Positions 5,645 through 61,503 of a stretch of DNA of 64,000 bases are shown in pieces. Both the position numbers and the translations under genes were made by a program. Numbering within the stretch: the stretch's first letter is position 1; the number at the start of each line of letters is the position of its first letter. The notes under the pieces are model-generated. The model did not search any database and was not told the DNA's origin. It saw nothing but the letters and a program-made list of their open reading frames with translations. Where the stretch lies: contig NIVC01001690.1 of the NCBI GenBank assembly GCA_002269645.1, positions 1 through 64,000 of the forward strand, read 5' to 3'. This DNA comes from Macrostomum lignano. Lineage: Eukaryota.

Positions 5645-8388
5645 TCATCGCTTGGCGAAGCCGCCCATTCTGGCCGGGTCCTGGCTGGGGTAGCTGCTGC
5701 TGCCACCGCCGCTCGATGACAGCCCTGGCAGCAGGCTGGGAACACCTGGCGGTAGTGGCTCAGTTGAAGCCGCACTACCCGATGCTGAAGCTTTCGAAGT
5801 CGAAGCCGCAGCCGCGGACGATGACTCCGACGACGGTCCAGCCTCCAGAGCGGCCAGCGCGGCCTCCTCTCGCTGCTGTTGAATAGTGGCGTATTTAGTC
5901 ATGAGCTTGTTAGCCACGGGATCGTTTGTGCCGTGGTAGCGATCGCGGATGTTCTGCTCGGACAGCGGGTCGTCGGGATCTGTTGGGCGCTCGTGCCTGT
6001 GGGATGGACAGGTGAAAGCTTTTCAGTTTTTCAACACTCATGTCGTTCGTTACCTGGTGAATGGAACTTTTAGTGAATGGGCACAGGTGAGTAGCACAGG
6101 GGAACAGGTGGGTAGCATTGGGGGCACAGATGAGTAGCATAGGGGGCACAGGTGAGTAGCATAGGGGGCACAGGTGAGTAGCACAGGGGCACAGGTGAGT
6201 AGCACAGGTGAGTAGCACAGGGGAACAGGTAGGTAGCACAGGGGGCACAGGTGAGTAGCACAGGTGCACAGGTGAGTAGCACAGGGGCACATGTGAGTAG
6301 CACAGGAAAACAGGTGAGTAGCACAGGGGCACAGGTGAGTGGCACAGGGGCACAGGTGAGTAGCACAGGGGAACAGGTGAGTAGCACAGGAGCACATGTG
6401 AGTGGCACAGGGGCACAGGTGAGTAGCACAGGGGCACAGGTGAGTAGCACAGGGCGCACAGGTGAGTAGCACAGGGGCACATGTGAGTGGCACAGGGGCA
6501 CAGGTCAGTGGCACAGGGGTACAATCCAACCGCTCACCTATACGGACACTCCTCGCCGCGTCTGCATTCGCCTTTAACGTAGAAGCTGCAAATATGCGGC
6601 CGGTTCCGCTTATAATATGGCGTAGTTCTGGCCAGCCGGTGCAGCATCTCCGAGGATGGCGCCGGAGCCTTACCGCCGCCGCCGCTGCCGCCTGCTAGGG
6701 CTGCCAGCGCGCCGCTGCCACCAACGCCGCTGCCGCCACCCCCGCCGCCGGCCGTCAGAGCGCCGGCAGTCAGAGCCTGGTTCTGTGTTCAGGTTGTTAT
6801 GTATCTTTTTGGAGTATATTTGTTTTTATTTTTAATAAATAATAAATTGCTTTACACGGTGTGGGTGAGTGAGTAATTGAGTAAGTGAGTGAGCGAGTAA
6901 GTGAGTAATTGAATGAGTGATAAAGTAAGTGAGTAAGTGAGTGACTGATTGAGTGAGTGATTAAGTGATTGAGTGAGTGATTGAGTGAGTGATTAAGTGA
7001 TTGAGTGAGTGATTGAGTGAGTGAGTGACTGATTGAGTGATTGAGTGATTGAGTGATTGAGTGAGTGAGTGATTGAGTGATTGAGTGATTGAGTGAGTGA
7101 GTGAGTGATGGAGTGAGTGTGTGAGTGAGTGATTAAGTAAGTGATTGAGTAAGTGATTGAGTGATTGAGTAAGTGAGTGTCAGTGAGTGAGTGAGTGATG
7201 AGTGATTAAGTAAGCGATTGAGTGACTGAGTGAGTGATTGAGTAAGTGAGGGAGTATCGATGTGAATAACTATGAGAAAGTGAAGGAGGGTGTGAATAAC
7301 TATGAGCAAGTGAAGGAGAGTGTGAATAACTATGAGCAAGTGAAGGAGGGTGTGAATAACTATGAGCAAGTGAAGGAGGGTGTGAATAACTATGAGCAAG
7401 TGAAGGAGGGTGTGAATAACTATGAGCAAGTGAAAGAGGGTGTGAATAACTAATGAGCAAGTGAAGGAGGGTGTGAATAACTATGAGCAAGTGAAGGAGG
7501 GTGTGAATAACTATGAGCAAAGGAAGGAGGGTGTGAATAACTATGAGCAAGTGAAGGAGGGTGTGAATGCCTATGAGAAAGTGAAGGAGGGTGTGAATAA
7601 CTATGAGCAAGTGAAGGAGGGTGTGAATAACTATGAGCAAGTGAAGGAGGGTGTGAATAACTATGAGCAAGTGAAGGAGGGTGTGAATAACTATGAGCAA
7701 GTGAAGGAGGGTGCGAATAACTATGAGCAAGTGAAGGAGGGTGTGAATGCCTATGAGCAAGTGAAGGAGGGTGTGAATAACTATGAGCAAGTGAAGGAGG
7801 GTGTGAATAACTATGAGCAAGTGAAGGAGGGTGTGAATAACTATGAGCAAGTGAAGGAGGGTGTGACTGCCTAGATTGGTGAGTATACGACTGGTTAAAT
7901 GACGTGATAGCATCAAAAACAAGCATTGCACTCATTGCATAATTTATGAATAAATTAAAATACAGTGCAATGTACACAGTTCTCACCTGCCATGGCACAG
8001 TTGGGTCGTCAGCCAGCACTCGTTCAACCTGCTGCATATAATACTCGCGCCCCACATCGGATTTAGGCAGTTTCTCGTTAATCTTAAGCGCTTTATCCCG
8101 AACCTCAACTGGCAGTCCATACTGCAGGTCCAGAATGCAGGTCTGGCAGACATTTTTAATCTTAGCGCAGGTCTGACAGACTTCTGTCTTTTTAAACCGC
8201 GACTTTGGCCCGGGACACCAGCGGAACACGGTGAATGGCCTGGTGCAAATCTTGCACTCTTTACCATAGCGCTCCTTCATCATTCTTAAGTAGGGATTTT
8301 CTCCCAGACAAGTCTGGCACAGGATGGGAAACTCCGCATCCTCCCAGTTCTGTCGATTGTAAGTGTTGGTGCCTTTGGAGTGAGCCAT
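5645..8388 (-). CDS. RBM22: Pre-mRNA splicing factor RBM22 homologue, 3 exons, ~330 aa, RRM absent
   Basis: Exons 8388-7987, 6776-6538, 5996-5645 with GT-AG introns join in frame. Contains [79 protein letters not shown] and terminal [10 protein letters not shown], all matching RBM22. Confidence 0.95.
6082..6520. repeat. ~21-22-bp minisatellite in RBM22 intron 2
   Basis: GCACAGGTGAGTAGCACAGGG units. Confidence 0.9.
6862..7258. repeat. (TGAG/TGAT)n microsatellite in RBM22 intron 1
   Basis: Degenerate GAGT/GATT tetramer array. Confidence 0.9.
7259..7869. repeat. 30-bp minisatellite, ~20 copies, RBM22 intron 1
   Basis: GTGTGAATAACTATGAGCAAGTGAAGGAGG units, highly homogeneous. Confidence 0.95.
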
Positions 8389-8599: not shown

Positions 8600-10355
8600 A
8601 AAAATGTTTTTAACTTTGTAAACCAAAGTTGTACACTTTTTCATTCTTGAATTTATTAATAATGCAGAGTAACAAACTTAAAAAATTTACCATTTTTCAA
8701 CATGCACTGAGAAGAGACAATTATAAAGGAAGTACTTTAAATACTTTTATTGAAAAACTGAGATTGAGATAGAAATTAAAAAATTGAGAAATATATGTTT
8801 TTTAAGGTACAATGTTCAAATTGCTTTTTAATTAATTTTTTTCTTTGTTCTGTGAATCCATATTGATTGTGTTGTATACCAGGCATATAACAAGGGTCTT
8901 ACCATTTTTCAGCATATATCAGGGTATATCCCATCCAGGCTTCCCAGCATACATGACACAGTGGATACATTGTGTATTGTATTGTTTGTTTGTATTGGTG
9001 CACAAACCCAGCATACAAACAAGGTCTTGTCATTTTTCTGGCATTAAACCTGCTATACACTAATACACAATCCAAACTATGGGTTGTATATAATATATTT
9101 TATGTAAAGTTACTGTATTTGATCCTAACATATATGCAAATATGTATAAATAAGCCTCAATTTTTATTATAAAGTTTCTTAGAGAATTTCATTTTAAAAT
9201 ACTACTGTTGTTATATTAATGCAAAATTTTTACTATAAAAATAAGCCAGTTTAAAGCCAAGAGAATAAACTCATTTTTATTTCCACTTCTTGCTCAGCTT
9301 TTCAAAGCCTTTTACTTCATGTGCTCCAGGCATTCTATTTGGAAACAAAAGTCAATCAGCCTTAGGGCTTGTATTTGCTCTTGTGTTACTTATTTTTAGT
9401 TGTAGATAGTGACTTAGGAATAGCCCCAAGATTAGGAGAATTCAATCTGTTCTTAGATAATGAGATATCTAGATTTAGAATATGAGAAATTTCCTTAGAA
9501 GGCAAAAATCCTACCACAGGGTAGAATAGTCCAGACTCAGAGTCTAAGAAACCTACTGCAGGGTAGAATACCCAGCAAGTAAGCTATGACCCTCTGATTC
9601 CAAGAACACCCAGGACTAAGAGAATAAAAATCTTTAGAAGAGTATAGGGATAGAATAGACAATGCCATAAGACCACTTAGGCTAGAAGTACAGTATATGT
9701 ATATATGCTACTAGTAGTTGATAAGTATATATACTACCAGCAATACTAATATCTAAAAAAGTACAAGTATTATAAAATCATTATAACTTGGCAACTTTTT
9801 AGGAAATTATAAGGAAAGAAGAAACAGCTCTACCACAGCTAATGCCAGTAGTAAGATCATCTCAAAGGATAGGCATTAGCCCTAGGACATATGCCATAGG
9901 TCTATCTAAGCCAAAAGTTTCTACTATGTCATATATGCAGGGATTTATGTTGATATATATAGAAAAATTTTGGTAAATAGCCTACCCTTATTATATGCCA
10001 GGAAATCTCCAATATATGTCACTTTCCAAATTATAGTGTACATTAAAATCAAATAGTGACTTAATATAAAATATATTAAGGGCCTATATGCAACACCATC
10101 AATATAGAATAAGCAAAGAATAACAAAAAGCTTTTTAAACTTTTTATATTTTAAACTTTGTGCCTTAACCTTATTTTTTCTTATTTTTAGCCAGTTAAAA
10201 TTTTTAAAGTACTTCTTTTATAATTGTCTTTTCTCAATCCATATTGCAAAATTATATAATTTTTGTTTGTTAGGCTACTTTATATGAATAATGAATTCTA
10301 GAATAAAAAACAATAGTAAGCCTACAACTTTGGCATACATAGTTAAAAAATTTTT
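8600..10355. mobile_element. Degenerate foldback/long-TIR element remnant
   Basis: Diverged inverted arms ~8600-8830 and ~10140-10355, e.g. TGAGAAGAGACAATTATAAAGGAAGTACTTT vs AAAGTACTTCTTTTATAATTGTCTTTTCTCA; ends and TSD not resolvable. Confidence 0.5.
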
Positions 10356-12863
10356 GTCTTAGAAGACTTTCTCTCCTATTAGTTAGGCCTAGACCTAGGA
10401 CCTAGCATATATTAATACACGATCTAAACTATGCTTTTGCTTGTGGTAGATCTCAAGTCTCAAAAATCTTAAAATACAATATTGTCCAACTGCTAATCCT
10501 TGGCTTTATTAGGGCCTAGATATACTTTTATTATAAATAAAGTGATAAAAAGCAAAAAATGACATATTGGGTATAGAAATTTGTTAAATAAAAGTTATAA
10601 AAATATTAGTAAAAAAGTTTTCAACCAGTCTTTCAGATAGTGCTAGCCTAAAAAATGAAATGCTTATTTATATTAGGCTTAGTGTTATTAAAAATATTTG
10701 TTGATAGCCTAACAAAGGTATAGTGTCTAGTGTAGAAAAAAAGCAAAATATACATTGCAAACTAGACAAAAAATGGCATACAATAGTTTTTTATATGCAA
10801 CACATACCAAGTTATGTTATATGGACACTTGGCTACTTTTTGGTAGAAAAACCAAAGTGAGGATGCAACCAGTGGCGCAAGCAGGGGGGACAGTTGCTTT
10901 GCCTAAAGCAAAGACTCAAAAAAATCTAAGGGGGGACCAAGCAAATTTTTGCCAAAAACAGAGCTACCCCTCCGGCCTCTGCCCTCTCTCTCAGGACTTT
11001 ACCTTCTAGAATCTGCCCCTCTCAAAAATTTTCTGGTTGCGCTACTGGATGCAACTTAAAAAACTAGTTTTGGAAAATTGAAATTTAGAGCAAATTAAGC
11101 CTATTTAAACATCAATAAAGACTAGATTTAAGCAGAGTAGCAATTGAAGTGTGTTCTAAGACAAAACAGCAAGAAAAAATTCATCCTTATTTGGCTAGTG
11201 GAAATTTTGTTTTCTTTTTTTCAAACCCTTCTAATGACAGCAATGATTCAACATGTTTGGTTTCAAACAGGGCTTTGCAGTGTCTTGATTGCAATAGACA
11301 CATCCAAAAAAGGTATTCCCACAGAGTGGTTTCTTAGCTTGTAGTTTATGCACTATATGTCTATAGGCAATTGAAAAAAAGTTTTTTTTTCATTATAGAA
11401 AAGAAGCAACAAAGTTTTGAAAGCTGTTTCTAACAGATTTCATATCTAAATACAATGTAATAATCAGTTTGTGTGTAGGCCTAAAGTGTCCTGCATAGGC
11501 ATTTTTGCATTTAAAGTTTTTTTAAGCTACTGACAGTAGAAAATGAGCATTTTTGTATGATTTTTTGCAAGAGAGCAGAACTTTTGTTTATTTTTTACTT
11601 TTTTCTTTTTTCTTCTGCTTTATTATTCAAAATGGCATAGGCCTAAGGCCTACAAACAAGAGGAAACAATGATCTTATTGCTAGATCTTCCCACAACCCC
11701 AATAATGGTACCAATGATTTGGGTAAATGGCAGGAGTAAATACCTTGTAATCTAATTAGTATTCCATTCTTAATTTAGAGTACTAATCAAATGGGCATTT
11801 TTGCAACTTACCTTGGCTAGGCCATTTACCAAGTTACCAGATAGCTAGATTGGCTTAGTGTTGCACCTGCATGATCTATAGGCCTATAAAGATAAAAATA
11901 GAACAATAGTGGTCTAAGGATTAAAATTCCATTTATGGCACCTCATTATTTTGAGAATAGAAGAAAAACTATCAATTGTATTTTGCAAAGCACTAAATTC
12001 CCTAATGCTAGGGGGTCCAGTGAGAAAATTTTTTTTTTGAATTCTTAACTTTTAACTATGCCATTTTGTAGATCTGGATGTTCTGATTGAAATGACACCA
12101 AGGTTTTAAAAATCGGTTCAGTAATAAAAAAAGTTATTGAGGTTTTTCTTCTGAAAAAATGCATCTTTTTCGTATCTCAAATACACTAGAAACTGTGCTG
12201 TTTTTGGAGGAAAAATCATGTTTTTCACAGTAAAATCTGTATAACATTTTTATTTTTCAAATAATCTTGGTGCTTTTGGTGTCATTTTGTAGCATTTTGT
12301 TTCCACTTTTTGATCCTGTATTCTGATGTGTACATGTGCTGCTGGAATTAATGCACTTTAGTGGAGATTGGCAAAAATTTGTTAAATACCATTTTTCCCG
12401 AGATATATTACTTTTACTTATTTAGGGTATATCTCCATAATTCCTGAACCAATCTTATTGTTTTTGGTGTCATTTTGTAGCTCTTTGTTGCCACTTGTGG
12501 ATCTTATATTCTTCTAGGCATATATGCTGCTAGGGTGTATGGAATTCAGTGGAAATGGGAGAAAATAAGTAAATAACTAATTATCCCAGGCCCAGGCCCA
12601 GGGTATAGTCTTTTTTTAGTATAGCCAATATAGGTATATCTCCATTTACCTTATCATATTGATTATTGTCCTACAAATGGTTTCAAATGGCTTTTTTGTC
12701 ATTAGCAGTATTAGTAGAATGAATTAGTAACTTTTACTAAAATGACACAAAGTCACAACATATCCCCATTTGGCCATTTCCATGACCATGCCCATGGCAT
12801 GGGCCATGGGCCATGGCCATGACACTACATGACATTTCAGCCTTTGCATAGCTTCTGGTCATC

Positions 12864-13679
12864 ATGGCTAGTCCTAATTCTGAGCCTAAGCTTCAGGCTG
12901 AGCCCAAGCCCAAGGGGACTGAGGCAGGGCAGGAGACCAGGGTCACTAACGGTCTCATGCTTGCCACCCTGGAAACCGCCATGGACGCAAAGTTGCCCAC
13001 CACTGAGATCTGGGACTCCTTGGCAGAGTGTATAGATTTGCCAAGTGAGACAAGCTCGGACGGCCTCAGGCTTCTCCATCGTGTGGTGCTGAAGCTGAAG
13101 GCGAAGTTGCGGGACCTGCAGCGGTCAAGGGTGCGCGAGGAGGCTGCTGGCAAGAAGAGTGCCTGGTCCAGCTTCATGGAGGCTGCTTTCGTCTGTCCTG
13201 GTGGAGTGATGGCGACTGCAACCCAGGCGCTGCCCATTCCTTGCACACCAGTCGGCCGAGCGTCCTCTTCTGCTGCTGCTGCTGCTGCCACGTCCCCTGA
13301 GGAGCAACGGGGTGTAGAGGCTGGCCTCCAAACTTCTGTAGCGGACCTGCGGGCCCAGCTGGCAAGCTCAGAGCAGACTGTGTGGAAGCTGCGTGCCGAG
13401 GTCTCTCGGCGCCCATTGCGGAAGATCTGGGTGCAGCGGGTCTGGCATCTTCAGGACCGACTGCAAGCAGCTCGGCAGCATGCGCGGATCAAGACCCAGG
13501 TGCTGCTGGCCATGCGTGATGCCAAGCAGTCTCAGAAGCGTCGCCAGGTTGCCCAGGCAGAAGCTGCTGCGGTGCAGCGCATCCGCGACCTTCAGGCCGA
13601 ACTGCGCCAGATGCATGATATGTTGTCTACCGCAAACAGTCGCGTAGAGGCATTGAATATAAATAATGTGTAGCTATTG

Positions 13680-13714
<35 letters not shown>

Positions 13715-14944
13715 GACAGATAGACAGACAGACAGACAGAGAAACAGACAGACACAGACAAAAGAAATATTCTTTGTGTCATTCATTCAACTTCCACTTC
13801 GAATCCAACCCTTATTCCTAACACCTAACAGATCCAGTATCTCCAGGACTACATCCGTGCCGGCCAGACGCATGTGCTCCAGACGCGCGAGCCGCGCCCT
13901 ACCGGTGGACAACAGTACACCAACAGGGTCATCTCCACGTGCATGGACCTGGTGCTCAAGTGCCACGTCCCTGTACAAGCTGTCCGCAACACCGTCAGGA
14001 CTGTCGTGGAGGACCTCTGCGAGTGGCGGATCGTCGACAACCTGCAGGCTTTCCTGGGCCACCTGGAGAAGCAGAACGATGCGCCTGTCGACGAGGTCAC
14101 TGCGCAGGCTGTTTCGGTGCGGTCTGCTGACGACCGTACTAGCCGTGTCCAGGCTGCCATTGCCAAGAAGCTGGAGCCAGCGCAACAAAAGGCCCCAGCT
14201 GCATCAGCACATCCAGGCGCCGCCAGACCTCGTGGACGGGGCCGGGGTTCTGGCCGAGGAGCTCAGCCTCCGGCTCAGGGCACCGACAGAGGTGGACGCG
14301 GGACTGGGCGTGGACGCAGGACTGGGCGCGGACGCGGGACTGGGCGCGGATGTGGGACCGGGCACAGACGTGGGACCGGGCGCAGACGTGGGAGTGCTGG
14401 CATCCGAGCCGGTGCAAAGCGGCCTCGTATCTCCAGCTCCGAGTCCAAGTCTGATTCTGACGCCTCCAGTCCTGAGGATGCCCCGGAGGCTGCCCAAGCC
14501 GCACTGGTGCCGACACTTGAGAACCTGCCAGACCTTGTGGGTCAGCGCGTTGAAATGCGCTTTGGCTACGCTGATGGGTCAGAGTGCTGGTCGCAGGGCT
14601 ACGTGCTGGGCCGTGTGCCAAGCTCGAGCCGTGATGTCCTCGCATGGGTCTTTGAGATGGTCTTCGACGAGACTCATACATGCGCAACCTTGGGAATCAC
14701 CCGGCCATTTCTATTGGCAACACACACATGTAAGTCACTATTGGCTGAGAGCAGTCACGTGACTACTATTCTGACCAATAGCGACTTGCCTGTGTGTGTT
14801 GCCAATAGAAACGGCCGGGTGAGTCCCAAGGTTGCGCCCAAGCATGACGAGACTGGCCCTGAGGATGTGTACCGGTACACACTGTGCAATGATTGGATGA
14901 ACAATGACCTCCACGTGCTGGATAGCGATGACAATGACGAGTAG
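12864..14944 (+). CDS. Transposon-borne protein: coiled coil, RG-rich tract, C-terminal Spindlin-like Tudor domain (~638 aa if spliced)
   Basis: ORFs 12864-13667 and 13832-14944 join in phase 0 across a (GACA)n intron (weak donor AAT|gtgtag, good acceptor ctaacag|). C-terminus LVGQRVEMRFGYADGSECWSQGYVLGR...WVFEMVFDE[insert]TGPEDVYRYTLCNDWMNNDLHVL resembles Spin/Ssty Tudor repeats. No DDE triad seen. Confidence 0.65.
14675..14845. mobile_element. Hairpin (MITE-like) insertion in frame within the Tudor domain
   Basis: Near-perfect inverted repeat 14682-14837 flanked by 9-bp direct repeat GACGAGACT (14666-14674, 14846-14854); total gain 180 bp = 60 codons with no stop. Confidence 0.8.
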
Positions 14945-15125
14945 CTTAAGTCCTTCTTAAAGTACTTTGTGGCCCAGCACTGCATCGCATGGTAGAGGGA
15001 AGGGGGGCATAGGGGGAATGTATATAGTACATATATCATTGTATGTATCATGCATGTACAGTTTCTATGTTTCTGCATAAAGACTTGTACTTACCAATCA
15101 GTTGAGCAGTTTTCTTACTGAACAA

Positions 15126-16381
15126 TTATTAGAAAGGAAGTTAGCATCGTTGACCAGACAAATGCCAGGGGTCGCTTGCTGGGATAGCTTTGCTGGGGTC
15201 AGTATCCAGCAGCCTTCCAGCGGAAGCCTTCCTTTTGACCCCCATGTTCCATGTATGGAATTAGATGTACAGATTCGTATGAAGCCATTTGACCACATAT
15301 ATATAGCTGTATATATTGTATAGAGGGTACAGTGGGCCCTACTATACTGTTTTGCAAAAAAGTGCATGCAGCAATTCCCCTTCATCTTTTCAACCCCTTG
15401 CTGTACATTTTCCTATCTCCGTAATGTATTTGCATGTATGCCTGCACCAATGTTGAGAATTTTCACCTAGTGCGGCAAGGGCTAGTGGAAATCGCTTTTA
15501 GGACAAAATATATGACCAATGTCCCTACCATTTGGTGAAAAAAACTCGCGGTTGACTCTTTCCATTTTTTAAAAAAAGTGCGATTTTTTTATGTTACTAA
15601 TGGGGATTTACATGTATTTTGCCCATTTCTGGTAAGCACACTGCGGCAAGGGTTAGAAGCATCCTGTTTGGCATAACAGGTTCTTTTTATCACCAGAAAT
15701 AAGTGGAAAAAAGAATTAGGGAGTTGACTCATTCCATTCAAAAGTTATGGCCATTTGAATTTTTCGATGTACATGTACATGTACATGTACATTTTTTGGG
15801 AAAATTTTTTCAGCCAAAATGGTCTGCATAATGATCCCTCAATCCAATGTGCATGCATCTTTGATAGTTTTGCACTCATTCAATGAAAACTGGAGCTGCC
15901 TGACCCCATATTTTTCTCCAATTTCGGCACAGTTTTAAAAATGTACAAAAATGTACACCATGTTTCACAGTCTGCAACTTTCTTGTTGTATGTACTACAC
16001 ACACAAGCAATATGTTGTTTGAAAGATCTACTTGTCTACTTTCCAACAAATGTAAGATCGTTGCAGTGTGTCACTTATTTCAAAAGTTATAGCCACAGAA
16101 AGAATACCACTTTTTTTGCCATTTTCCTTTATTAGAAAGGAAGTTAGCATCGTTGACCAGACAAATGCCAGGGGTCGCTTGCTGGGATAGCTTTGCTGGG
16201 GTCAGTATCCAGCAGCCTTCCAGCGGAAGCCTTCCTTTTGACCCCCATGTTCCATGTATGGAATTAGATGTACAGATTCGTATGAAGCCATTTGACCACA
16301 TATATATAGCTGTATATATTGTATAGAGGGTACAGTGGGCCCTACTATACTGTTTTGCAAAAAAGTGCATGCAGCAATTCC
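15126..16381. repeat. 253-bp apparently exact direct duplication (15126-15378 and 16129-16381)
   Basis: TTATTAGAAAGGAAGTTAGC...GCATGCAGCAATTCC present twice, ~1 kb apart, no differences seen by eye. Confidence 0.9.
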
Positions 16382-16586
16382 AAAACAGGCTCACTGGACC
16401 CCCTACTAATGCAAAATAATATACAAGAAAATGCTAAAAAATGATACCAAGCTCATAGTCATAAAACTATATCAGTATATGCAGCAAAAAATTTAGAGCA
16501 TTAAGAACACAAATAAATCACTTTTTTGGTCAAAATGATCATATAGACACAGTCCTAATATAAATTTTCCATAGGCATAAGGAAAC

Positions 16587-18457
16587 CCCCATAGTTCGGA
16601 ACACTCTGTATGTACCCCGGAAAAAAAACTACCAATTTTTTTTGTGTACGCCGATGTACGCCATATATCTTTGTGACGTTGTCGTTTTACAGTGCAGTTA
16701 TTAAATTTGTCTTCTATGTAAATATATTACTTATAGGAGATCGAAAACAAAATCACTTCCAAACATTTGGTACTGTAGCTGCTCATGAATCTTGCACCGA
16801 GGATTTTCAGCTCGAAAGGCTTCATGGAGTGCACCCTATGACTCCGCAATTGCATCCCATTGGTTCATTGCTGCTTCATTGCTTAACGGTGTGGCCGTTT
16901 TGTTGTGTGGCTATTCCGCGTAACACGCGCCACACGCGGAACGGCCACACGACAAAACGGCCACACCGTCAAAACGGCCACACGACAAAACGGCCACACG
17001 ATGTAATAATTTTTTATTTTTTCATTTTTCATTTTTAACAATGGACGACAGTTGTCCAAAGTGTCTACTTAGAGTCAGACCTCGCCAGCATGCATTGTGT
17101 CTGAAAGGTGAGTTGCTGTTTATAGTATGCTGTTATAGTTGTAATTATTTGAATTAACTGTAATTGGTAATTATTGTATATCTGCTGCTACTGCAGGAGA
17201 CGCAGCCGTTTCTATAGCTCGCTACAATGCCATGAAGAATGAGACGATGCCATGGTTTTGTCCAAATTGCCTGCTAGCACCCAGCTCAGCTGCTGAGCAC
17301 AGTGCGGCAGCGGAACCCAGCTTAGCTGCTGAGGAGCGACCTGCCTTACATTTGCGAATAAGGATACCAGCATCTGACGCACCTGAAGTTGTTACCAGAA
17401 GGTTTAGGTAAGTCGATGCATGTGAAGTTGAGATAAAGCAGATTTTTTTCTACATTCCAATTCTCTACATTTCAGGCCTCGAGGCTGACTCTGAGACACT
17501 TGTAGACAGCTTGTTTAAGTTGCATAGCACAGAATTGGATGTTGGCATTGACGAACCAACAATTGAGCTGGAGCTTCCAACAGTACTGGAAGAAGAGGAA
17601 GAGGCTTTCTTACACAACTATTTTAGCATCTTTTAAAAATTTGCATAACTGCTGGTCGCTCCATAAAAAACAATTTCGTCTTCGCTTCTCTGGTGCTTCC
17701 TTTTCGGATCCTTTTCGGCCTACATAAATTTCACAATATCTCAATGCATTTACTTCTTTTGCATTTTGATGTCATAAGCTGGATCTCATGAGCAATCGAT
17801 CTGCAACCCTTTTTGTTTTATGTGGCCGTTTTGTCGTGTGGCCGTTTTAACGGTGTGGCCGTTTTGTCGTGTGGCCGTTCCGCGTGTGGCCGTTTTGACG
17901 GGCATCCAAGGAACTGCTGGGCCGCGAAGGTTGGGATGACTCGCGCATTTGAGTCCGATACAACCTAAATGAATGTCCAGGTTGTATCTATCTGGAATAT
18001 CAAATGTCTCACGCCCAAAACGGCCCGATAAAAACATATTTAATTTTAAATTGTCTATGTTGAAAACGGAAAGTAACTTTTTTATTTATTAGTAAGAACT
18101 ATTAAAAAGTGACAGATTTATATGTACACAGTTTATTTATAAAATTTAAGTAAAATTTGTGCATTTTTTGTTAAAATTACAACTTCACCACAAGCAAAAA
18201 ACACGAAAGTCAGTTCTGCATCAATCGTGAAATTTTACAGTAAATGCATAATGAACGACTTTGTAACTGTTATTGATTTCACTAGGTTACGAATTTTTTG
18301 TTTTTTGGTGCATGTTACACACCAAATTAATAATCATGGTTAAACATGTACGCCAAAAGCCTTAGAAAATTACTATTTGTACGCCAACATGTACGCCAAA
18401 TTTCTTGACTGTACCCCGGAAATTTCCGGCGTACATGCCCTCTTCCGAACTATGGGG
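16587..18457. mobile_element. 1.9-kb non-autonomous TIR DNA transposon with PHD-finger remnant
   Basis: 15-bp TIR CCCCATAGTTCGGAA / TTCCGAACTATGGGG; probable 4-bp TSD AAAC; subterminal TGTACGCC and GTACCCCGGAAA motifs; internal inverted arrays of ACGGCCACAC (~16920-17000 vs ~17820-17900). Confidence 0.8.
17041..17407 (+). pseudogene. Spliced PHD-finger-like mini-gene, internally deleted
   Basis: Exons 17041-17107 and 17197-~17407 (GT-AG) give MDDSCPKCLLRVRPRQHALCLKG|DAAVSIARYNAMKNETMPWFCPNC; first and last Cys pairs plus the W before the last pair are present, central C-H-C ligands missing. Confidence 0.55.
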
Positions 18458-19715
18458 AAACCCAAAGACAAAATATTTTTTCATAAAAAATTGAATAACT
18501 TTTTTGTTCCTCAACCAAATTCAACAAATAAGGCCTTTTGGACTTCTGTCACTCATATCTATCTATTTAAAAAATAAAAATTGTAGAAATATATAATTTC
18601 AAAATCTCACTGGAGCTGAGTCCCTATCTACTATAATATAATCTAGTAGTATCATACACTGTGTATGTAGTGATACATTTTTAAGAATTTTATCATGAAT
18701 ATATAGCAAATATGATTTTGATTTCAACAAAAATACAATATAATGAAATGCAAAATTATGGCTCACACAACACAAGTGTGCAAATAAATTTTAGCATGCC
18801 ATTTGTACCAAAAATCACATAAAATTATAGTGATGTTCATCTTGTCTACAAATTTGTATCCCAGGTTTGTCCACACCGCAACCCTAGTACATCAAACATG
18901 ATATATGAATTTATATATTGAGACAGACAAAAAACTGTCTGCATATTTTCTATTGGATTTTCGTAAACTTAAAGATAATGTTGTTGAACAATGACAAAAG
19001 ACAAATTACACGTTTCAATTTAATGTTAACAATTTGCGCCGTTCAAAAAAAGTTTTCCTATAAATGGCGTTATAACTAAAATTTGCCAAAATCATAAAAA
19101 ATATAAACGATTAAACCGCAAACTAAACCTACAGAACTAAAAGAATGTGTCGAAACAATTGATAACGTGATCCTGAAATGAAGTTAAACGTCAGCTACGA
19201 TAATGCATGTACATTCGTACGTACATGCATCTGCATATTGGATGCAAATTTACTGGTATAATCAGCGGTGTCGGAACATATTTCAAAGTGGGGGGGGGGG
19301 GCTATTGGTGGGAGGGCACATTGCACTTAATTTCTTTTAGTCTAAGGGCACCCAAACTTCTGCTGTTATATCAGTTTGTGAAATTGTGACAACCAGGCCG
19401 ATATTCAATTCTGTGTTGGAAGTGGACAAGTCTGAAAATGTTCAAATATTCAACTGATTCAAACATTGCGCAACTAATTGCGAAAATTGCATTATCAATT
19501 TCTTTAGTAAATATCTCAAATGAATGAAAACTGCAAGGGCAAGACCAGTAGTTTTCTGGTTCTCTCCTTTAGTTCCTCTTGGTGCTGACTATTCTTTTAG
19601 CTGGCGGTATTTTAGTGATTTTAGTTGCAGCGCCAGCAGCGGTTTAAGTCTTTGGGATTGCGGTGGACTCGGAATTTCAATCAGAGACGCCAAAGCGAAA
19701 TGGTAAACACAAAAA

Positions 19716-21999: not shown

Positions 22000-23291
22000 G
22001 CCAATCCAGTAGCTTGGCACATGCTCCGCTCTGATGCGCCTATAACTAAACAAGGCGATCACACTGGGAATCGAAGGCACGAAAGTCATGTACATGTACA
22101 GTGTACATTGTGCAGAGAGTACATATGCGGCCTTAAACGGCGCACAGCAATCTGATGTCGGAAACGTCTGCAAACATTATTAGAATGTTGCCTGCATGGG
22201 CACATGAGGAATCGTATTACCATATTGCTTAGATTAGCCATATCTCTGTAACGTGTACACGTGTAAATGTACGTGTGCATGCAGTTACACGTGAGTTTAA
22301 GGCATGCAGCATTAATCCCACTGAGCTATTGAAATTGTGTGTAGGCTGGCATTTCTTACTGCTGGCTACAATGCTAATTTCAAGTAGAGTTATCCATTTT
22401 AAACTCTGTATTTTTCTACACATACCGGTAATACTGTTCAAGTGTTTTGACTCCTCGAAATCCGGGAAAACTTTTCTAATAAGCTTATCAATTCCTGTCG
22501 TGAAGGAGATTTTTCAGTTTTCTGAGAAGGCTAGCTAAGGCTAACAATTGCTAAGAGTTTCAGTACAGAGAAAAAACAAAAACCAAGGGGTCGACCTTCT
22601 TTATCTGCTGCTTGTGGCGCAGGATTAGTATAAAAAAGATTCTGCATTTAAAGTTATTTCCAAGTCCGGCTTTTTAACACATTAAACTGGAGCTAAAGTT
22701 AATGCTGTTAGGAGAAAAAATATAAACAACAGCTTTTTGAGGGTTCTTAAAAAAACGCGATTTCTTCTCTCACTTTTCTGGCATTCTGTCAACTCCTGAA
22801 ATCCTGTATCTATAGTCACACCTAATACCCTGATTAACATTCCGAGACGCTGAACCATTGAAAGCCTAAATTAGGGTAAGTTTAAAGTGAATTTTGCTTA
22901 GTGCATTGGGAATCTGGAGGCAGACTTAACTGCTGTTAGTGGGGTCATAAAGATCATGTTAATATTCGAGACATTCATTTGACACTTACAGAGGTGACTG
23001 TATCATAAAGTAAGACTAGCATTCTGGTTACCAGCAAGAAATCCAGTTGGAGTCACATGTACATCCGGGTTACCAGGTTGTCACAGAGGTAAAATCACAT
23101 CCTAGTCATCACCGGAGGTAGAATCACATTTGGTTTACCAGACCATCAAGGTAGTAGACTTTAGTCCTAGTTACCAATTACCATGAGCTCCTAAAGTTAA
23201 AAACTTACGTGTACATCTGTATATCTAGATCTGGATCATATTCGTACAGGTAGACTTACGATCCGGTTACAATCAGGTCATGTATTACCTA

Positions 23292-25056
23292 GTGCGTTCA
23301 AAAAGTTCTTAGACACCCCTCATATCTCTGCATCTGTTCGACCGATTTTGATGAGAATTTATACAAACATAGGTCTATATTTGATGAATTCAGTGCTATA
23401 GAGTTTCAGCTTGGTCGTATAGACAGAACGAAAGCAATTGATCATTTACTGACGAACCTACGAAATTAGCAATACGATTTTTAAACAGCATCGGATCTGG
23501 ACCTCACTCAAAACTGGGGGGGGGGTTGTGAAATCGCAGCTTGTTTTTGGAGGAATAAAAGCTTTCGCTGAGTATTGATTAATCATTACTTTCAAGCTGC
23601 GAGGGTTTAGCCATAGACAAAAAACAGATAGAACGAAGCAGTAGGCAGCATTGACTGAGTGCGCAAAACGAACGTCAGATTGAAATGCTGAGATTCAGAA
23701 CCAACCTCGGACGGTTTAAGAATGGCTAGTGCATATGGCGATAAAGTTTCGCAGCGCCTGATCGTTTTTGCTTTTGCGGACGAAGGCATGTCCGTGAACA
23801 CTATCCACCAGAGATTAGTCAGCCGTTTTGGAGATGATGCCTGCTGTCGAGCAACCGTCGCGAACTGGGTCCGGAAGAGAAAGGACGGCGAAACGAGCGT
23901 GCAGGACAAGCCGCGCTCAGGCCGACCAGCTACTGCAGTCAACGACAGCAGTGCCATCCTGATTGAAGAGCTGGTTAGTGAAAACGGCCACATCACTATT
24001 GACGAGTTGGCCAATGCCGCCGAGATTTCGTGTGGCTCGGTCTTCCAAATTCTGCACGAGCATCTTGGTCTGTCAAAGCTGGTCTCTCGATGGGTGCCAA
24101 GACTGCTAACTGCCGAGCAGAAAAATCGCCGATACGAAGTCTGCTTGCAAGAAAGGGCGGCAATTTCAGCTCTGGGAGACGAGTTCAAAAGCAGATTTGT
24201 AACTCAAGATGAGTCCATGTTTGCCCTGTACGACCCACTCTCCCGGCGGGAGTCGAGGGCCTGGCTTCCGAGGGGCGGCGGCGGCGGTGACGTCGAAAGC
24301 GCAGGCACCTATCCCAAGAAGATCATGTTAAGTGTTTTTTGGGATGCGAGCGGGCCCCTCATGTTCACGTGGTACAGCCAGGGCCAGACACAGAACAGCG
24401 AGCGGTTTTGTGACGAGCTCACGAGGCTGAGACAGGAGCTACTGCAACGGCGTCGGATCGTGCGCAAAGGCATCCTGCTGCACTGCGACAATGCCCGGCC
24501 GCACTCGGCAGCCCTCACTCGCTCTCACATCGACAGCCTCAGATTCCAGCAGTGGCAGCATCCGCCCTACTCGCCTGATTTGGCACCGTTTGACTATGGC
24601 CTTTTTGGACACGTCAAGGCGCAGCTGAGAGGCAAGAGGTTCGCTAGCTTCCCCGAGCTGCAAACGGCTGTTGAGGGGCTCGTCAGAGCGACTCCTAGAG
24701 ACACGTGGTTAGGATGGATCGAAGAGCTGCCGATACGGTATGACAAGTGCATTCAATGGAACGGTGATTACTTCGAAGATTTTCATGATTGGTGATCTGA
24801 TTTTTGAAGTTTGGGAACTTGCCAACTTGAACCGTTTGGCCTTTAGCTTGTACGTTTTGTTATGTGCTTAAAATCGTATTGCTAATTCGTAGGTTTGTCA
24901 GTAAATGATCGATTGCCTTTGTTCTGTCTATACGACCAAGCTGAAACTCTAGCACTGAATTCATCAAATATAGACCTATGTTTGTATAAATTCTCATCAA
25001 AATCGGTCGAACAGATGCAGAGATATGAGGAGTGTCTAAGAACTTTTTGAACGCAC
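23292..25056 (+). mobile_element. Full-length mariner transposon with ~190-bp TIRs
   Basis: TIR GTGCGTTCAAAAAGTTCTTAGACAC... at both ends, TA flanks (23290-23291, 25057-25058), intact transposase ORF. Confidence 0.95.
23722..24795 (+). CDS. Mariner (DD34D) transposase, 357 aa
   Basis: HTH region, WVPRLL, QDES (D1), HCDNARPH (D2), YSPDLAPFDY (D3); 34 residues counted between D2 and D3. Confidence 0.95.
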   Translation: MASAYGDKVSQRLIVFAFADEGMSVNTIHQRLVSRFGDDACCRATVANWVRKRKDGETSVQDKPRSGRPATAVNDSSAILIEELVSENGHITIDELANAAEISCGSVFQILHEHLGLSKLVSRWVPRLLTAEQKNRRYEVCLQERAAISALGDEFKSRFVTQDESMFALYDPLSRRESRAWLPRGGGGGDVESAGTYPKKIMLSVFWDASGPLMFTWYSQGQTQNSERFCDELTRLRQELLQRRRIVRKGILLHCDNARPHSAALTRSHIDSLRFQQWQHPPYSPDLAPFDYGLFGHVKAQLRGKRFASFPELQTAVEGLVRATPRDTWLGWIEELPIRYDKCIQWNGDYFEDFHDW

Positions 25057-25136
25057 TAAGGTGTAAAAAGTAAAATCAAAAGTTTCAATATTTCATTTTA
25101 AATAAGAGAATCAAATCGCAATATTTTTAGAAAGCC

Positions 25137-26069
25137 ATGCGTCCTATATTGTCTTCATTAGTGCAATCGAAACGTCAGATTACCTATTCACTGATTGGGC
25201 TGATGGCCCTAGCAATCATCCTGATCGGTGCGCTCATGTTAAACCAGAATTTTTCGACTCTGTCTGTAAGTCGCGCAACGGGTAGCTCTCAAGCACCGCT
25301 AATCAGTGAGTCAAAAATCGTATCAAAGGATGTCAGCTTTCTATCCCTGATTGAAAGCTCCATGCACAACATGACCGCACGGCAGCTGGAGGATCTGTAT
25401 TACTTCATCATACAGCACAGACAGATCGAGTGTTTCAAGTGGCGTCGAATTGGTAAGGAGGTCGACGGAGGCTGGGACGTTTGCTTTACAGCGCCATTCG
25501 ACATTCGACGGGTCAGCGGGCGACCCTGCGTAGCATTCTCCTTCGGCATCAACGGCGTCTTCGAGTACGACGACGAACTAGCGGACGCCTACCACTGCCG
25601 GGTGTACATGTTCGATCCGAGCATGACCAAAGTCGAAGACCATCAGCGCAAGAAAACATCCTGGTTCTACAAACTCGGCCTTGGACCCAGCAACTCCGTG
25701 CAGAAGAAAACTGGTTGGACAATGCGAACGTTGTGTACCTTATTTAAACAGTTCGGCTTCGAGAACTCGCCGATTGACATACTTAAAGTGGACATCGAAC
25801 TGTGGGAATGGGACAGCTTTGACGCTGCACTGCGCGAGGGTTGCCTGTCCAGGGTGCGTCAGCTGCTGTTTGAGTCGCACACAGACGAGCTGGTGTACCA
25901 GCGACCGGACTACGGGAAGCTGGTTCGAGTGTGGCTCGGCCTGTTCAAGATTGGCTTCCGTACTTGGAAGTTCCACGAGAACCCCTATTCGATTTTCTTC
26001 AAATCCATAACTGGAGATCAAAGGGCCTGTTGCTATGAGCACTACTTGGTGAATGTTGCTCACATTTGA
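25137..26069 (+). CDS. METTL24-like (Methyltransf_22/FkbM-type) methyltransferase with N-terminal membrane anchor, intronless, 310 aa
   Basis: Hydrophobic ITYSLIGLMALAIILIGALML; RIGKEVDGGWDVC, FSFGINGVFEYD, VYMFDPS, IDILKVDIELWEW, VRQLLFESH motifs. Confidence 0.85.
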   Translation: MRPILSSLVQSKRQITYSLIGLMALAIILIGALMLNQNFSTLSVSRATGSSQAPLISESKIVSKDVSFLSLIESSMHNMTARQLEDLYYFIIQHRQIECFKWRRIGKEVDGGWDVCFTAPFDIRRVSGRPCVAFSFGINGVFEYDDELADAYHCRVYMFDPSMTKVEDHQRKKTSWFYKLGLGPSNSVQKKTGWTMRTLCTLFKQFGFENSPIDILKVDIELWEWDSFDAALREGCLSRVRQLLFESHTDELVYQRPDYGKLVRVWLGLFKIGFRTWKFHENPYSIFFKSITGDQRACCYEHYLVNVAHI

Positions 26070-33261: not shown

Positions 33262-34786
33262 ATGAACTCTGAATCCTGGGATCGTCAGCTGCTTCACGCA
33301 GCCGTTTCCGGAGACGTCAACGAGACTCGACGCCTGCTGCGCATCCCGGATCCCCCGTCGGTGACCGCCACGAAGTCGCCAAACTGTCGCAACGAGCGCG
33401 GCGAGACGCCTCTGTGGCTGGCTGCCAACGCGGGCGCATTGGACGTCGCTCGACGCTCGTCGAAGCCGGCGCAGACGTTGATTGTCGAAACGAGCGAGGG
33501 AGACGCCTCTATGGATTGCAGGCCAAAACGGTCAACTGAGCGTTGCCAGGCTGTTGCTAGGCTTAGGAACCGACGTTGACTGTCAGAGACGCAGCGGCGA
33601 GAGCGTCCTGTGGATCGCTGCTTGCAACGACCATCTCCGTCTGGTGGAGTTGCTTCTGCGGAATGGTGCTCGGCAAGACCTGCTCAACCAGGTGGGAATT
33701 TGCCCACTGTGGATCGCGGCCTGCAACTGCAACGCTGACATTGTCGACTCGCTGCTCCAGGCCGACAATGTCGACTGCCGGCGCAGCGGCGGAGAATCCG
33801 CGCTGTGGATCGCTAGCCAGTCGGATTGTCCAAGAGTTGTCCAAAAGTTGCTGACCGCCGGCGCAGAAGTTGACGCGACCAACTCCGAGGGACAGTCGGC
33901 TCTGTGGGCTGCTAGCCGTTTGGGGCACGCGAAAATTTCTGCGCAACTGCTCGCTGCAGGTGACATAGGCGATTAAATATGTACTTTTACTGTCCCAGCT
34001 TTTCCTTTTTAAATACACATCCATATCTTTCGTTGGGATCTGAAATCACCCCTTGCTCCACATATCCATATCTAAACTCACCAATGGTTCCACATCTGCA
34101 TTAGAAATCACCAATGGTTTAACATCCGCATTTACATCCACATTGGAAATCACTACTTGCTCCACATCCACATTTACATCCGCATCTGAAATCCCCACAG
34201 GGTTTCACATCCGCATCTGAAATCCCCATGCGTTTCACATCTTCATCTGACCACGGGTTTCACATCCGTATCTAAAATCACCACAAGGTCAGTACTACTG
34301 TACTGTATATCATGTAGAAGCATGTACGTGTTCAGAGGCTAATAGAAGAGGCAGCATGACTGCTTGCCTCCTGTCTGGCTGCAAGTCAACTGTCGCCTTG
34401 GACTCGCGGCAGTTCCCAAACCCCTCCAGCGACTTAAATATTAGAAGCAAAAGCATCACACATTTGACTTCAAAGGAGCCGATGTGAACTTGTCGAGCAA
34501 CTTCGGCGAGACACCGCTGTGGGTGGCAGCTCACAACGGACACGCTGACGCTGTAAAACTGTTGCTCAACTTTGGTGCTGCAGCCGGCAGTCGAGACAGA
34601 CGCTTGGCCAGCTCACCAGTGGAGAATGCAGCCCGAAACCGGCATCCAGAAGTCCTGCGACTGTTACTATCCAACGGCATTTGTGAATCGGACGTCTTAG
34701 GTCTCGACGACCCACTGATTGACCGAGAGTTTCTGACTACTGCCCTGGAGACACCGGAGAATAATCGGAATTACAAACAGCTGTAA
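33262..34786 (+). CDS. Ankyrin-repeat exons (~8 repeats), two apparent -1 frameshifts; possibly the N-terminus of the cGLR
   Basis: Repeated GETPLWLAA / GESVLWIAA / GICPLWIAA / GESALWIAS / GQSALWAAS motifs; exons 33262-33959 and 34476-34782 (or stop at 34786); frame slips near 33455 and 33499. Confidence 0.85.
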
Positions 34787-35049: not shown

Positions 35050-37553
<2,504 letters not shown>

Positions 37554-49107: not shown

Positions 49108-57900
<8,793 letters not shown>

Positions 57901-61128: not shown

Positions 61129-61503
61129 TGTGTCCGGGATGACTTGAGTGAAACGTTTTCGACTTATATAGCCATATGGTATCCGCATGAGCCAGCAAAC
61201 TTCCGTCAATATTAGTTTGATTGATTGCAGATTAAACTAATTTTACCCAAGCCAATATGGCTATTAGGCCAGAGTGAAAGTGGCTTATTCAGTGCGTTAG
61301 ATTGGTAGAAGGCTCTCCCTGTTTGCCTGCATGCACAACTCGATGAGAGAGATTTGTAAACACGGGAGACCCCGTGACTGAATCATGTTGACTCTGTGCA
61401 GGCATGAACTCAGCTGTGGCTACAGCAGCTCGAAATTAAATTTGTGAAAAAACAGAGCAAAACTAAGATCTTTTCAGTAAGGTAGGCATCTGAAGTGAAT
61501 TAC

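Follow-up and report, generated by a model that had tools for sequence, protein, structure and literature searches.

Does a DNA transposon whose gene ends in a chromatin-reader-like domain carry that domain as a passenger from its host, or does the domain belong to the transposase? The question is raised by a locus in a 64,000-nucleotide stretch of the Macrostomum lignano genome (contig NIVC01001690.1, positions 1 to 64,000 of the forward strand), which is referred to here as the window. A preliminary description of the window had picked out, at 12009-16405, a DNA transposon carrying a Spindlin-type Tudor domain and an arginine-glycine (RG) tract 'instead of a transposase core'. We consider it highly probable that 12009-16405 is a non-autonomous, internally deleted cut-and-paste transposon that inserted recently, and that its family has a native C-terminal Spindlin-type Tudor domain. 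Judged by sequence comparison, the RG tract and the Tudor domain are native parts of a transposase and not captured host sequence. The quoted phrase is therefore right for this copy, which lacks the core, and wrong for the family, where the two parts form a native C-terminal module.

Ends, full-length relatives and internal deletion of the element

The element is framed by perfect terminal inverted repeats (TIRs) and a target-site duplication (TSD), and its 5′ end is shared with a related element at another M. lignano locus (L003):

12002-12008, no strand: left TSD copy, CTAATGC, identical to the right copy at 16406-16412
12009-12024, + strand: left TIR, TAGGGGGTCCAGTGAG, the exact reverse complement of 16390-16405
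12009-12195, + strand: 5′ terminal region, which shares homology with the L003 element at its 5′ end
16390-16405, − strand: right TIR, 16 bp, forming a perfect pair with the left TIR
16406-16412, no strand: right TSD copy, CTAATGC, directly outside the right TIR

Perfect inverted pairs of at least 14 bp were rare (mean 4) when the window was shuffled 40 times with a Markov model, and none was accompanied by a TSD of at least 5 bp. The 16-bp TIRs and 7-bp TSD that had been read at 12009-16405 are thus present and beyond chance.

Between these ends lies a gene of two exons, with the following parts:

12864-13667, + strand: exon 1, residues 1-268; N-terminal region plus coiled coil, with homology to the N-terminal part of full-length transposases
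13668-13831, + strand: intron of 164 bp, GT..AG, containing an (AGAC)n microsatellite; splice sites and frame checked
13832-14944, + strand: exon 2, the second coding exon, to the terminal stop
13895-14020, + strand: putative helix-turn-helix of residues 290-331, RPTGGQQYTNRVISTCMDLVLKCHVPVQAVRNTVRTVVEDLC; no other N-terminal motif is as well conserved in the family
14021-14038, + strand: internal-deletion junction, residues 332-337 (EWRIVD); homology stops at VVEDLC and resumes at NLQAFLG
14039-14224, + strand: residues 338-399, helical tail or linker, with homology to the pre-RG region of full-length relatives
14225-14401, + strand: RG tract, residues 400-458, located by TRF (Tandem Repeats Finder) and repeat finding, and in the same place in the full-length proteins P0014 and P0018
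14402-14530, + strand: Ser/Asp-rich acidic linker with a KRPR basic patch, residues 459-501
14531-14941, + strand: predicted single Spindlin (Spin/Ssty)-type Tudor-like domain, residues 502-578, with the next feature inside it
14675-14846, no strand: secondary insertion, a 172-bp palindromic miniature inverted-repeat transposable element (MITE), in frame, with 63-nt arms that are 92% complementary

The reading frame of 1917 bp contains the terminal stop only, while the other two frames have 13 and 34 stops; with the MITE removed the protein has 578 residues. An intron of ∼170 bp occupies the equivalent position in L003. The two-exon gene and the 13667/13832 junction of the preliminary description agreed with the splice sites and the open frame. 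Its coiled coil is present too, and its derivation of the RG-rich tract from a repeat of ∼18 bp holds: positions 14294-14393 of the tract are 5.6 copies of an 18-bp unit. The putative helix-turn-helix has columns that are invariant in the family alignments A1 and A4 and matched the Pfam family HTH_Tnp_ISL3 weakly (E 0.016). The acidic linker aligns with SDSESDS in L003 and SDEASAD in L001, a further M. lignano locus, and its KRPR patch may serve as a nuclear-localisation signal. A Pfam scan of the MITE-free 578-residue protein returned no real match.

Relatives of the gene were found by a HMMER search of 1.84 billion representative proteins with window positions 13832-14230, which avoid the RG tract. 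There were three real matches (P0001, P0002 and P0004; E 1e-9 to 4e-7), all from M. lignano (GCA_002269645.1 = Mlig_3_7 = NIVC00000000). These proteins, of 793-1092 residues, could be aligned with the complete N-terminal third of the window protein (alignment A1), which comprises a short N-terminal region, the coiled coil and the motif RPxGGxQYTNxV(I/V)xxCxxLVLxCHVPV, including the GGQQYTNRVISTCMDL segment singled out in the preliminary description. Further invariant blocks of the relatives are (T/H)D(A/G)TSK, MTDRHVVNK and FCGMHxIVNLA and, later, NVAxERxF. Two proteins of 1158 residues each, P0014 (PAA56257.1) and P0018 (PAA87338.1), hold all the parts in a single chain, in the order coiled coil, putative helix-turn-helix, candidate DDE core with CxxH, helical tail, RG tract, acidic linker and Tudor-like domain. 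Longer copies combining a DDE domain with RG tract and Tudor domain had been predicted, and these two proteins, with their candidate core, fit that prediction.

The genes of these relatives lie in mobile elements. Full-length M. lignano elements measure 6.6-7.3 kb, and the TIRs of three related M. lignano families are near-identical (TAGNNNGTCCAGTGAG). Loci L001 and L002 hold the same 7.3-kb sequence at 99.9% identity within unrelated flanks, and L009 is a third copy with different surroundings; the ends are TAGGCTGTCCAGTGAG and CTCACTGGACAGTCTA, and the TSDs are CCTATAA, GTATAAT and ATTTTAT. Given this identity, some M. lignano copies have probably been active recently. A second M. lignano family is represented by a 6.6-kb element at L003 and L010 (TIR TAGGGTGTCCAGTGAG, TSD TTATTAT). 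The window TIR is one nucleotide away from that of L003/L010 and two to three nucleotides away from the two ends of L001/L002/L009.

A more distant family, with ∼30% protein identity, was recovered from another eukaryotic host (ENA assemblies ERZ18545484, ERZ23495284 and ERZ6126425 and Logan SRR18248219). It is intronless, its TIR is shorter and starts TAGCGAT, and its ends are TAGCGATATCA and TAGCGATGTCA. Two 3.9-kb copies (L005 and L006) are 100% identical in different flanks, with the TSDs CTGCTGG and GTTATAG. The proteins of this family (P0022-P0025, 978-1000 residues) end in a Tudor-like domain and have no RG tract. In total, seven of seven independent insertions (that in the window and six related ones) have a TIR starting TAG and a TSD of 7 bp, and the TSD sequences all differ, so that TIRs and a TSD of fixed length are found together as in TIR DNA transposons. 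The other TIR-bounded copies on which the preliminary description had staked its reading thus exist, with near-identical TIRs and 7-bp TSDs.

Comparison with the full-length elements shows what the window copy has kept. Window residues 26-339 aligned with P0014 residues 31-346 at 36% identity (blastp, E 8e-40), and window residues 338-575 aligned at 38% identity (tblastn, E 1e-36) with one frame of L003 (13876-14490) that encodes the helical linker, the RG tract, the Ser/Asp linker and the Tudor-like domain. The same linker-RG-acidic-Tudor arrangement was found in L001/L002 (tblastn, E 5e-14). At the DNA level, the 5′ 187 bp of the element matched positions 1-186 of the L003 element with 75% identity over 191 aligned columns (blastn, E 3e-23). 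P0014 residues ∼340-953 have no counterpart in the window protein, and this span includes TDATSK, MTDRH, CGMH and APERNF. From these alignments, the window protein appears to consist of the first ∼335 and the last ∼240 residues of a transposase, with ∼610 codons, including every candidate catalytic motif, deleted in frame. The protein termini and the 5′ 187 bp are colinear with full-length elements and the catalytic region is gone, as in a non-autonomous internal-deletion element; the earlier view of the copy as a deletion derivative without a DDE domain is borne out in so far as the candidate catalytic motifs are missing. Since L001 has no intron at the equivalent of the junction, which falls inside its second coding block, a deletion in the DNA is likelier than exon skipping. 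With all candidate catalytic residues deleted, the copy should be unable to move alone. A full-length relative could mobilise it in trans, since both TIRs and the homologous 5′ end have been retained.

The distant family was reached with the low-complexity-free alignment A4 against an index of 5.8 billion proteins, in which neither the whole protein nor its C-terminus had found a match. The whole-protein query was probably swamped by RG and poly-Ala words. The C-terminal query is likely to have failed since P0002 and P0004, which represent their clusters, are truncated or frame-shifted models without the Tudor part.

Several of the deposited M. lignano transposase models (L001/L002, 13693-14390; L003 model, 10001-13238) are truncated or frame-shifted before the RG and Tudor parts, P0002 and P0004 among them, and such faulty models therefore hide the Tudor domain from searches of cluster representatives. 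Other models form chimeras with host genes, as in P0012, which continues into an Arl8-like GTPase; ANK, CDT1, SAM and HECT occur among the UniRef names. A terminal half-Tudor in P0001 is probably read-through, given that the P0012 model enters the flanking Arl8-like gene, and was withdrawn as evidence. For P0020, UniRef gives 'DUF659 domain-containing'; this name was not used, since a Pfam scan did not reproduce it and the sister names come from chimeric models. The Logan contig L004 had no recognisable TIRs.

The C-terminal Tudor-like domain

In the window copy this domain is interrupted by the MITE, which has an 8-bp TSD, ACGAGACT, at 14667-14674 and 14847-14854, and which lies between the strands aligned to WFYITYE and LYMYQL of SPIN1. 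It contributes 60 stop-free codons to the gene, which reads it in its single open frame out of six. The M. lignano relatives do not have the MITE and their alignment runs unbroken across the excision point, so its removal from the protein is correct. The preliminary description had removed a 180-bp insert: the excised protein is unchanged, whereas the boundaries were one register off, the insert being a 172-bp MITE with its 8-bp TSD. There were no further copies of the MITE in the 64-kb window or in the M. lignano loci, and reading of the sequence by hand for removal by splicing at an internal GTAAGT gave no in-frame acceptor. The 60-residue insertion probably damages or cripples the Tudor domain of this copy.

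The Spindlin type of the C-terminus, proposed in the preliminary description, was recovered with the window sequence alone and far more strongly with its relatives. With the C-terminal 102 residues as a phmmer query against the PDB, the top 16 of the 19 listed matches were Spindlins, with E-values from 8e-4; with the whole protein, only Spindlin-1, -3 and -4 were matched besides low-complexity matches to the RG tract. A Smith-Waterman alignment with the SPIN1 segment scored 77, compared with 25 ± 4.5 for shuffles, and 0 of 5000 shuffles reached that score. A profile of three flatworm-type sequences matched SPIN3 (E 1.7e-6) and SPIN1 (E 2e-5) in the PDB. When the distant family was included, the resulting seven-sequence profile matched SPIN3 (3.5e-17), SPIN1 (1e-15), SPIN2 (2.4e-14) and SPIN4 (6e-14), the Spindlin E-values ranging from 3.5e-17 to 1e-13. 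All three Spindlin repeats were matched, the best being repeat 2, and the next Tudor domains were those of SETDB1 (E 4e-3) and L3MBTL3 (E 4e-2). Among the Pfam families, Spin-Ssty matched P0024 below the cut-off (E 0.0018; 18.5 bits against 25 bits) and did not match the domains of P0014 or P0018; the PTM/DIR17-like Tudor family matched P0023 and P0024 (E 0.0025-0.008). The assignment of the family's C-terminal domain to the Spindlin (Spin/Ssty)-type Tudor-like domains is thus statistically solid at the level of the family profile.

The alignment with SPIN1 Tudor 2 that the preliminary description had given was reproduced by phmmer against the PDB, with one correction: in the family-profile alignment the conserved tryptophan falls directly on W151 and not beside it. 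The cage-equivalent residues of the window protein are F512, W521, F546 and Y555. In the seven-sequence alignment the position of SPIN1 F141 is invariably F, that of W151 invariably W and that of Y170 always F or Y. We take SPIN1 W151 and Y177 to be positions of the aromatic cage. Mutation of SPIN1 F141 and Y170 abolishes H3K4me3 binding (bioRxiv 10.64898/2026.08.20.746118).

AlphaFold models of the Tudor domain had beta strands where they were expected but a predicted local distance difference test (pLDDT) score of only 49-62. The top Foldseek match was Spindlin-1 (E 0.07), and neither of the two low-confidence models searched with Foldseek gave a significant match. Because the models are of low confidence, the Tudor-like fold is inferred from sequence homology.

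The family resembles the Spindlins (SPIN1-4, Ssty; PF02513) in the profile match to their repeats and in the aromatic equivalents of F141, W151 and Y170. It differs in that Spindlins are stand-alone proteins with three tandem repeats, whereas here one repeat sits on the C-terminus of a transposase, in that the transposon domain scores under the Pfam cut-off, and in that the Y177 position varies.

Superfamily placement, non-coding regions and surroundings

The deleted core of the full-length transposases is a candidate for the RNase-H type, and its D, D, CxxH and E motifs are invariant. In P0024, D338 and D412 are 74 residues apart and the candidate E follows D412 by ∼323 residues, a spacing that we take to resemble that of Hermes (D180, D248, E572). 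The block of ∼320 residues before the E of xxERxF was predicted to be helical with moderate confidence. Like hAT elements (Hermes, Ac, Tol2), the family has short TIRs starting with TAG, a single large transposase and D-x-T-S/T, TDRHxxxK, CxxH and xxERxF contexts. Unlike them, it has a TSD of 7 bp in every one of the seven insertions instead of the canonical 8 bp, a coiled coil and helix-turn-helix at the N-terminus and a Spindlin-type Tudor domain at the C-terminus. No member matched the hAT dimerisation domain PF05699, a BED finger or other hAT-related Pfam families. The hAT 5′-YARNG rule is followed by TAGGG (window and L003) and broken at position 5 by TAGGC/TAGAC (L001) and TAGCG (L005). 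Repbase has hAT families annotated with a 7-bp TSD (PMC4455052), and this group of transposons may already be present, unremarked, among those entries.

The P superfamily (P element, Galileo, 1360) shares with the family the CxxH motif and, in Galileo, TSDs of 7 bp (PMC2775673, PMC4168063); the context of the first D looks like that of hAT and not that of P. No THAP zinc finger was evident at the N-terminus on reading the sequences, and Pfam THAP/THAP9 and Tnp_P_element gave no match. The order of coiled coil, helix-turn-helix and catalytic core presumably resembles that of P transposase and THAP9. The CxxH motif is common to hAT, P, Kolobok and MuDR (PMC3706591) and therefore places the family in that group. 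Since its core matched neither Pfam nor PDB, the clade may be an unclassified branch of the group, and 'hAT-like' is best taken as a description of how the transposase probably works, as read from its motifs, not as membership in hAT.

Dada elements, which have TSDs of 6-7 bp and C/DxxH after the second D, lack TIRs, carry CCCC and CCHC zinc fingers and target snRNA and tRNA genes (PMC3706591). They were considered for their TSD length and ruled out by the clear TIRs, the differing TSDs and the window insertion site, where Rfam shows no RNA gene. The preliminary description had assigned 7-bp TSDs to a hATw subgroup; in the literature that name was found only as a RepeatModeler label in amphioxus, and the amphioxus tesD/hATw paper is unrelated, tesD being a bHLH gene.

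Outside the gene, the element has two repeated regions:

12239-12399 and 12427-12587, + strand: two diverged subterminal direct repeats of ∼161 bp, 70% identical, with a spacing of 188 bp
15126-16381, + strand: 3′ non-coding region; its 253-bp direct repeat is perfect and has one TIR-like motif, TAGAGGGTACAGTGGG, per copy

The subterminal repeats may be a putative transposase-binding region. In the 3′ region, 15126-15378 and 16129-16381 are 100% identical with a spacing of 1003 bp, which amounts to a tandem duplication of 1.25 copies, and the second copy stops 8 bp short of the right TIR. The TIR-like motifs at 15321-15336 and 16324-16339 are oriented as the left TIR. Positions 15130-15244, within the repeat, have 73% identity to the 3′ region of the L001 element. 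The 253-bp repeat could be a recent duplication, a product of aberrant gap repair or an assembly artefact.

The surrounding sequence is eukaryotic and rich in micro- and minisatellites. Short repeats at 10918-11053, 18134-18455 and 18475-18615 match parts of L001-L003 of M. lignano with 70-81% identity. Another candidate TIR element (16588-18456) begins 183 bp downstream of the Tudor element, with a perfect 14-bp TIR, CCCATAGTTCGGAA, a 6-bp TSD, GAAACC, and inside it 16-bp tandem arrays in mirror image (16929-17001 and 17821-17897); a long open reading frame (ORF) of recognised function is absent. At 23290-25058 there is a Tc1/mariner-like element with TIRs of ∼190 bp (23290-23481 and 24870-25058). 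Its ORF (23722-24795) encodes an intact 357-residue transposase (Pfam Transposase_1 and DDE_3), and for this reason the element may be active. A sequence resembling a short interspersed element (SINE), GGTGAACTGAAGCAATGCAGAGTTAAGTGTCTTGCTCAAGGACA..., occurs in three copies (52854, 54211 and 62392), one of them beside a tRNA-like segment at 54084-54153. This segment, probably the leading part of a tRNA-derived SINE, scores 42 bits in Rfam, and ARAGORN makes no call there. Pieces of host genes lie around the element:

7948-8388, − strand: host-gene piece
25137-26069, 33482-33976, 35734-36660, 49502-49660 and 55244-55723: host-gene pieces
59014-61209, − strand: host-gene piece

They include an STL11/RBM22-type splicing-factor exon that enters a 30-bp minisatellite, a Methyltransf_22 ORF, ankyrin repeats and a Mab-21-like domain, as well as a rhodopsin-type G-protein-coupled receptor (GPCR) and transglutaminase fragments, N- and C-terminal, with a (CTGT)n array of 1 kb between them.

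Competing explanations and meaning of the finding

The insertion at 12009-16405 is taken to be recent because the TIRs, the TSD and the internal 253-bp repeat are all perfect. In the proposed history, ∼610 codons would have been lost in frame first, after which the 172-bp MITE would have entered a loop of the Tudor domain; a full-length relative would mobilise the copy in trans. In the full-length elements, the Tudor domain would tether the transposase to a methylated histone tail and so bias the choice of integration site. By analogy with chromodomain integrases, this tethering would be the simplest role for the domain, which is likely to be functional at the level of the family because it has been kept, with three cage aromatics, across relatives of ∼30% identity. 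The truncated protein of the window copy, if made, may compete with the transposase at the element ends in the manner of KP, the P-element repressor; as the gene now stands, with the MITE in it, the protein is most likely an inert by-product.

Several observations weigh against a non-autonomous transposon whose family has a functional Spindlin-type reader. The candidate core had no Pfam match in nine members and no match to a PDB transposase with profiles A2 and A6, so that 'DDE core' and 'hAT-like' rest on motif inspection and on the residue spacing of Hermes. The Pfam family Spin-Ssty (PF02513), against which the preliminary description had proposed to check the de-inserted C-terminus, did not match the window sequence alone, the best score in the family being 18.5 bits against a cut-off of 25. 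The position of SPIN1 Y177 is variable, being Y in the window and then F, V, C, C, Y and C. The AlphaFold pLDDT was 49 for the window C-terminus with the MITE (single sequence) and 56 for P0024 (nine-sequence alignment), values too poor to classify the fold. Finally, a MITE in the Tudor-coding exon speaks against a current function of the protein of this copy.

Among the alternatives, the one that survives best, itself doubtful, is that the Tudor-like domain does not read histones and instead binds methylated arginines in RG sequences (in its own tract or in host proteins of the Piwi or Sm type), or only multimerises. Many Tudor domains bind methyl-arginine, and in each of the three flatworm families an RG tract precedes the domain by ∼45 residues. 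The fourth position of the cage varies. In SPIN1 itself, the first Tudor domain reads H3R8me2a and the third makes protein contacts (bioRxiv 10.64898/2026.08.20.746118). However, P0022-P0025 keep the domain without an RG tract, so a ligand in cis cannot be its general function; the tract is lineage-specific. The best match is moreover to Spindlin repeat 2, the H3K4me3 reader, with aromatic residues at the F141, W151 and Y170 positions.

A selected role for the truncated protein, either as a KP-like repressor of its family or as a domesticated host factor, is unlikely. In its favour are the in-frame deletion, the 1917-bp open frame and the MITE read through without a stop, and the protein has kept the coil, the helix-turn-helix and the C-terminal module, the parts that such a competitor would need. 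The KP element of Drosophila arose by an internal deletion that drops the catalytic part and keeps the N-terminal DNA-binding and coiled-coil regions and both element ends; unlike KP, the window deletion also keeps a C-terminal chromatin-type module. Yet the insertion looks young, as its perfect TIRs, TSD and 253-bp repeat indicate, and an open frame is therefore expected without selection. The prior chance that a deletion is in frame is 1 in 3, and that of an open MITE frame is ∼1 in 6. The probable damage to the Tudor domain by the 60 inserted residues counts against a selected role as well.

Gene capture (transduplication), in which fragments of a host Spindlin-like gene and an RG-rich gene ride as passengers in a non-autonomous transposon, is very improbable. 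Such captured fragments are common in some DNA transposons, and the window protein, which has no core, ends like a host chromatin reader. Against this, two other M. lignano families have full-length transposases that end in the linker-RG-acidic-Tudor module, and the Tudor domain is also C-terminal in the 30%-identical transposases of another host. Since it is present in full-length and in distant transposases, the Tudor domain is ancestral to the clade and was not captured in this copy. That the TIRs and TSD are coincidental and the gene an ordinary host gene has virtually no likelihood: there is no second copy in the 64-kb window, but a perfect 16-bp pair with a 7-bp duplication occurred in 0 of 40 shuffles, matching TIRs and TSD length bound mobile relatives, and the 5′ end of the element is homologous to theirs.

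We return to an internally deleted transposon from a family with a native Tudor domain. In the literature searched, no link between a transposase and Spin/Ssty or Spindlin domains was found. A pan-eukaryotic survey of fusions between transposable elements and chromatin domains recovered mainly Chromo and PHD (10.1101/2021.11.30.470311), and the brown-alga element Gypsy-10_Ec32 was described in 2025 by its authors as the first transposable element with a Tudor domain (PMC12477816). Chromovirus integrases, Gypsy-10_Ec32 and the sponge hAT-Chromo elements likewise carry a C-terminal reader of methyl marks that is thought to steer integration (10.1101/2021.11.30.470311; PMC12477816). Those elements, however, have Chromo or PHD domains, or a Tudor domain on a long terminal repeat (LTR) retrotransposon, whereas here a Spindlin-type Tudor domain is found on a cut-and-paste transposase.

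In this family a Spindlin-type Tudor domain is an ancestral part of a DNA transposase, kept across ∼30%-identical relatives in two hosts. Mobile elements with chromatin readers are rare natural experiments on the choice of integration site, the known cases being the chromodomains of LTR-retrotransposon integrases. The bolder proposal, that this clade of transposases reads methylated histones to choose sites or to evade silencing, and that its domain is a sibling or the source of that in animal Spindlin/Ssty proteins, is speculative and more probably wrong than right. In mammals, SPIN1 has been tied to the silencing of young transposons through reading of H3K4me3/H3K9me3 (PMC11499256; bioRxiv 10.64898/2026.08.20.746118). 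With a relative of the domain borne by a transposon, the steering of insertion, interference with host silencing and the origin of the Spin/Ssty fold therefore become testable. M. lignano is tractable for transgenesis (PMC5730564) and, with several multi-copy families of Tudor-bearing elements, some of whose copies are 99.9% identical, would be a practical system for such tests.

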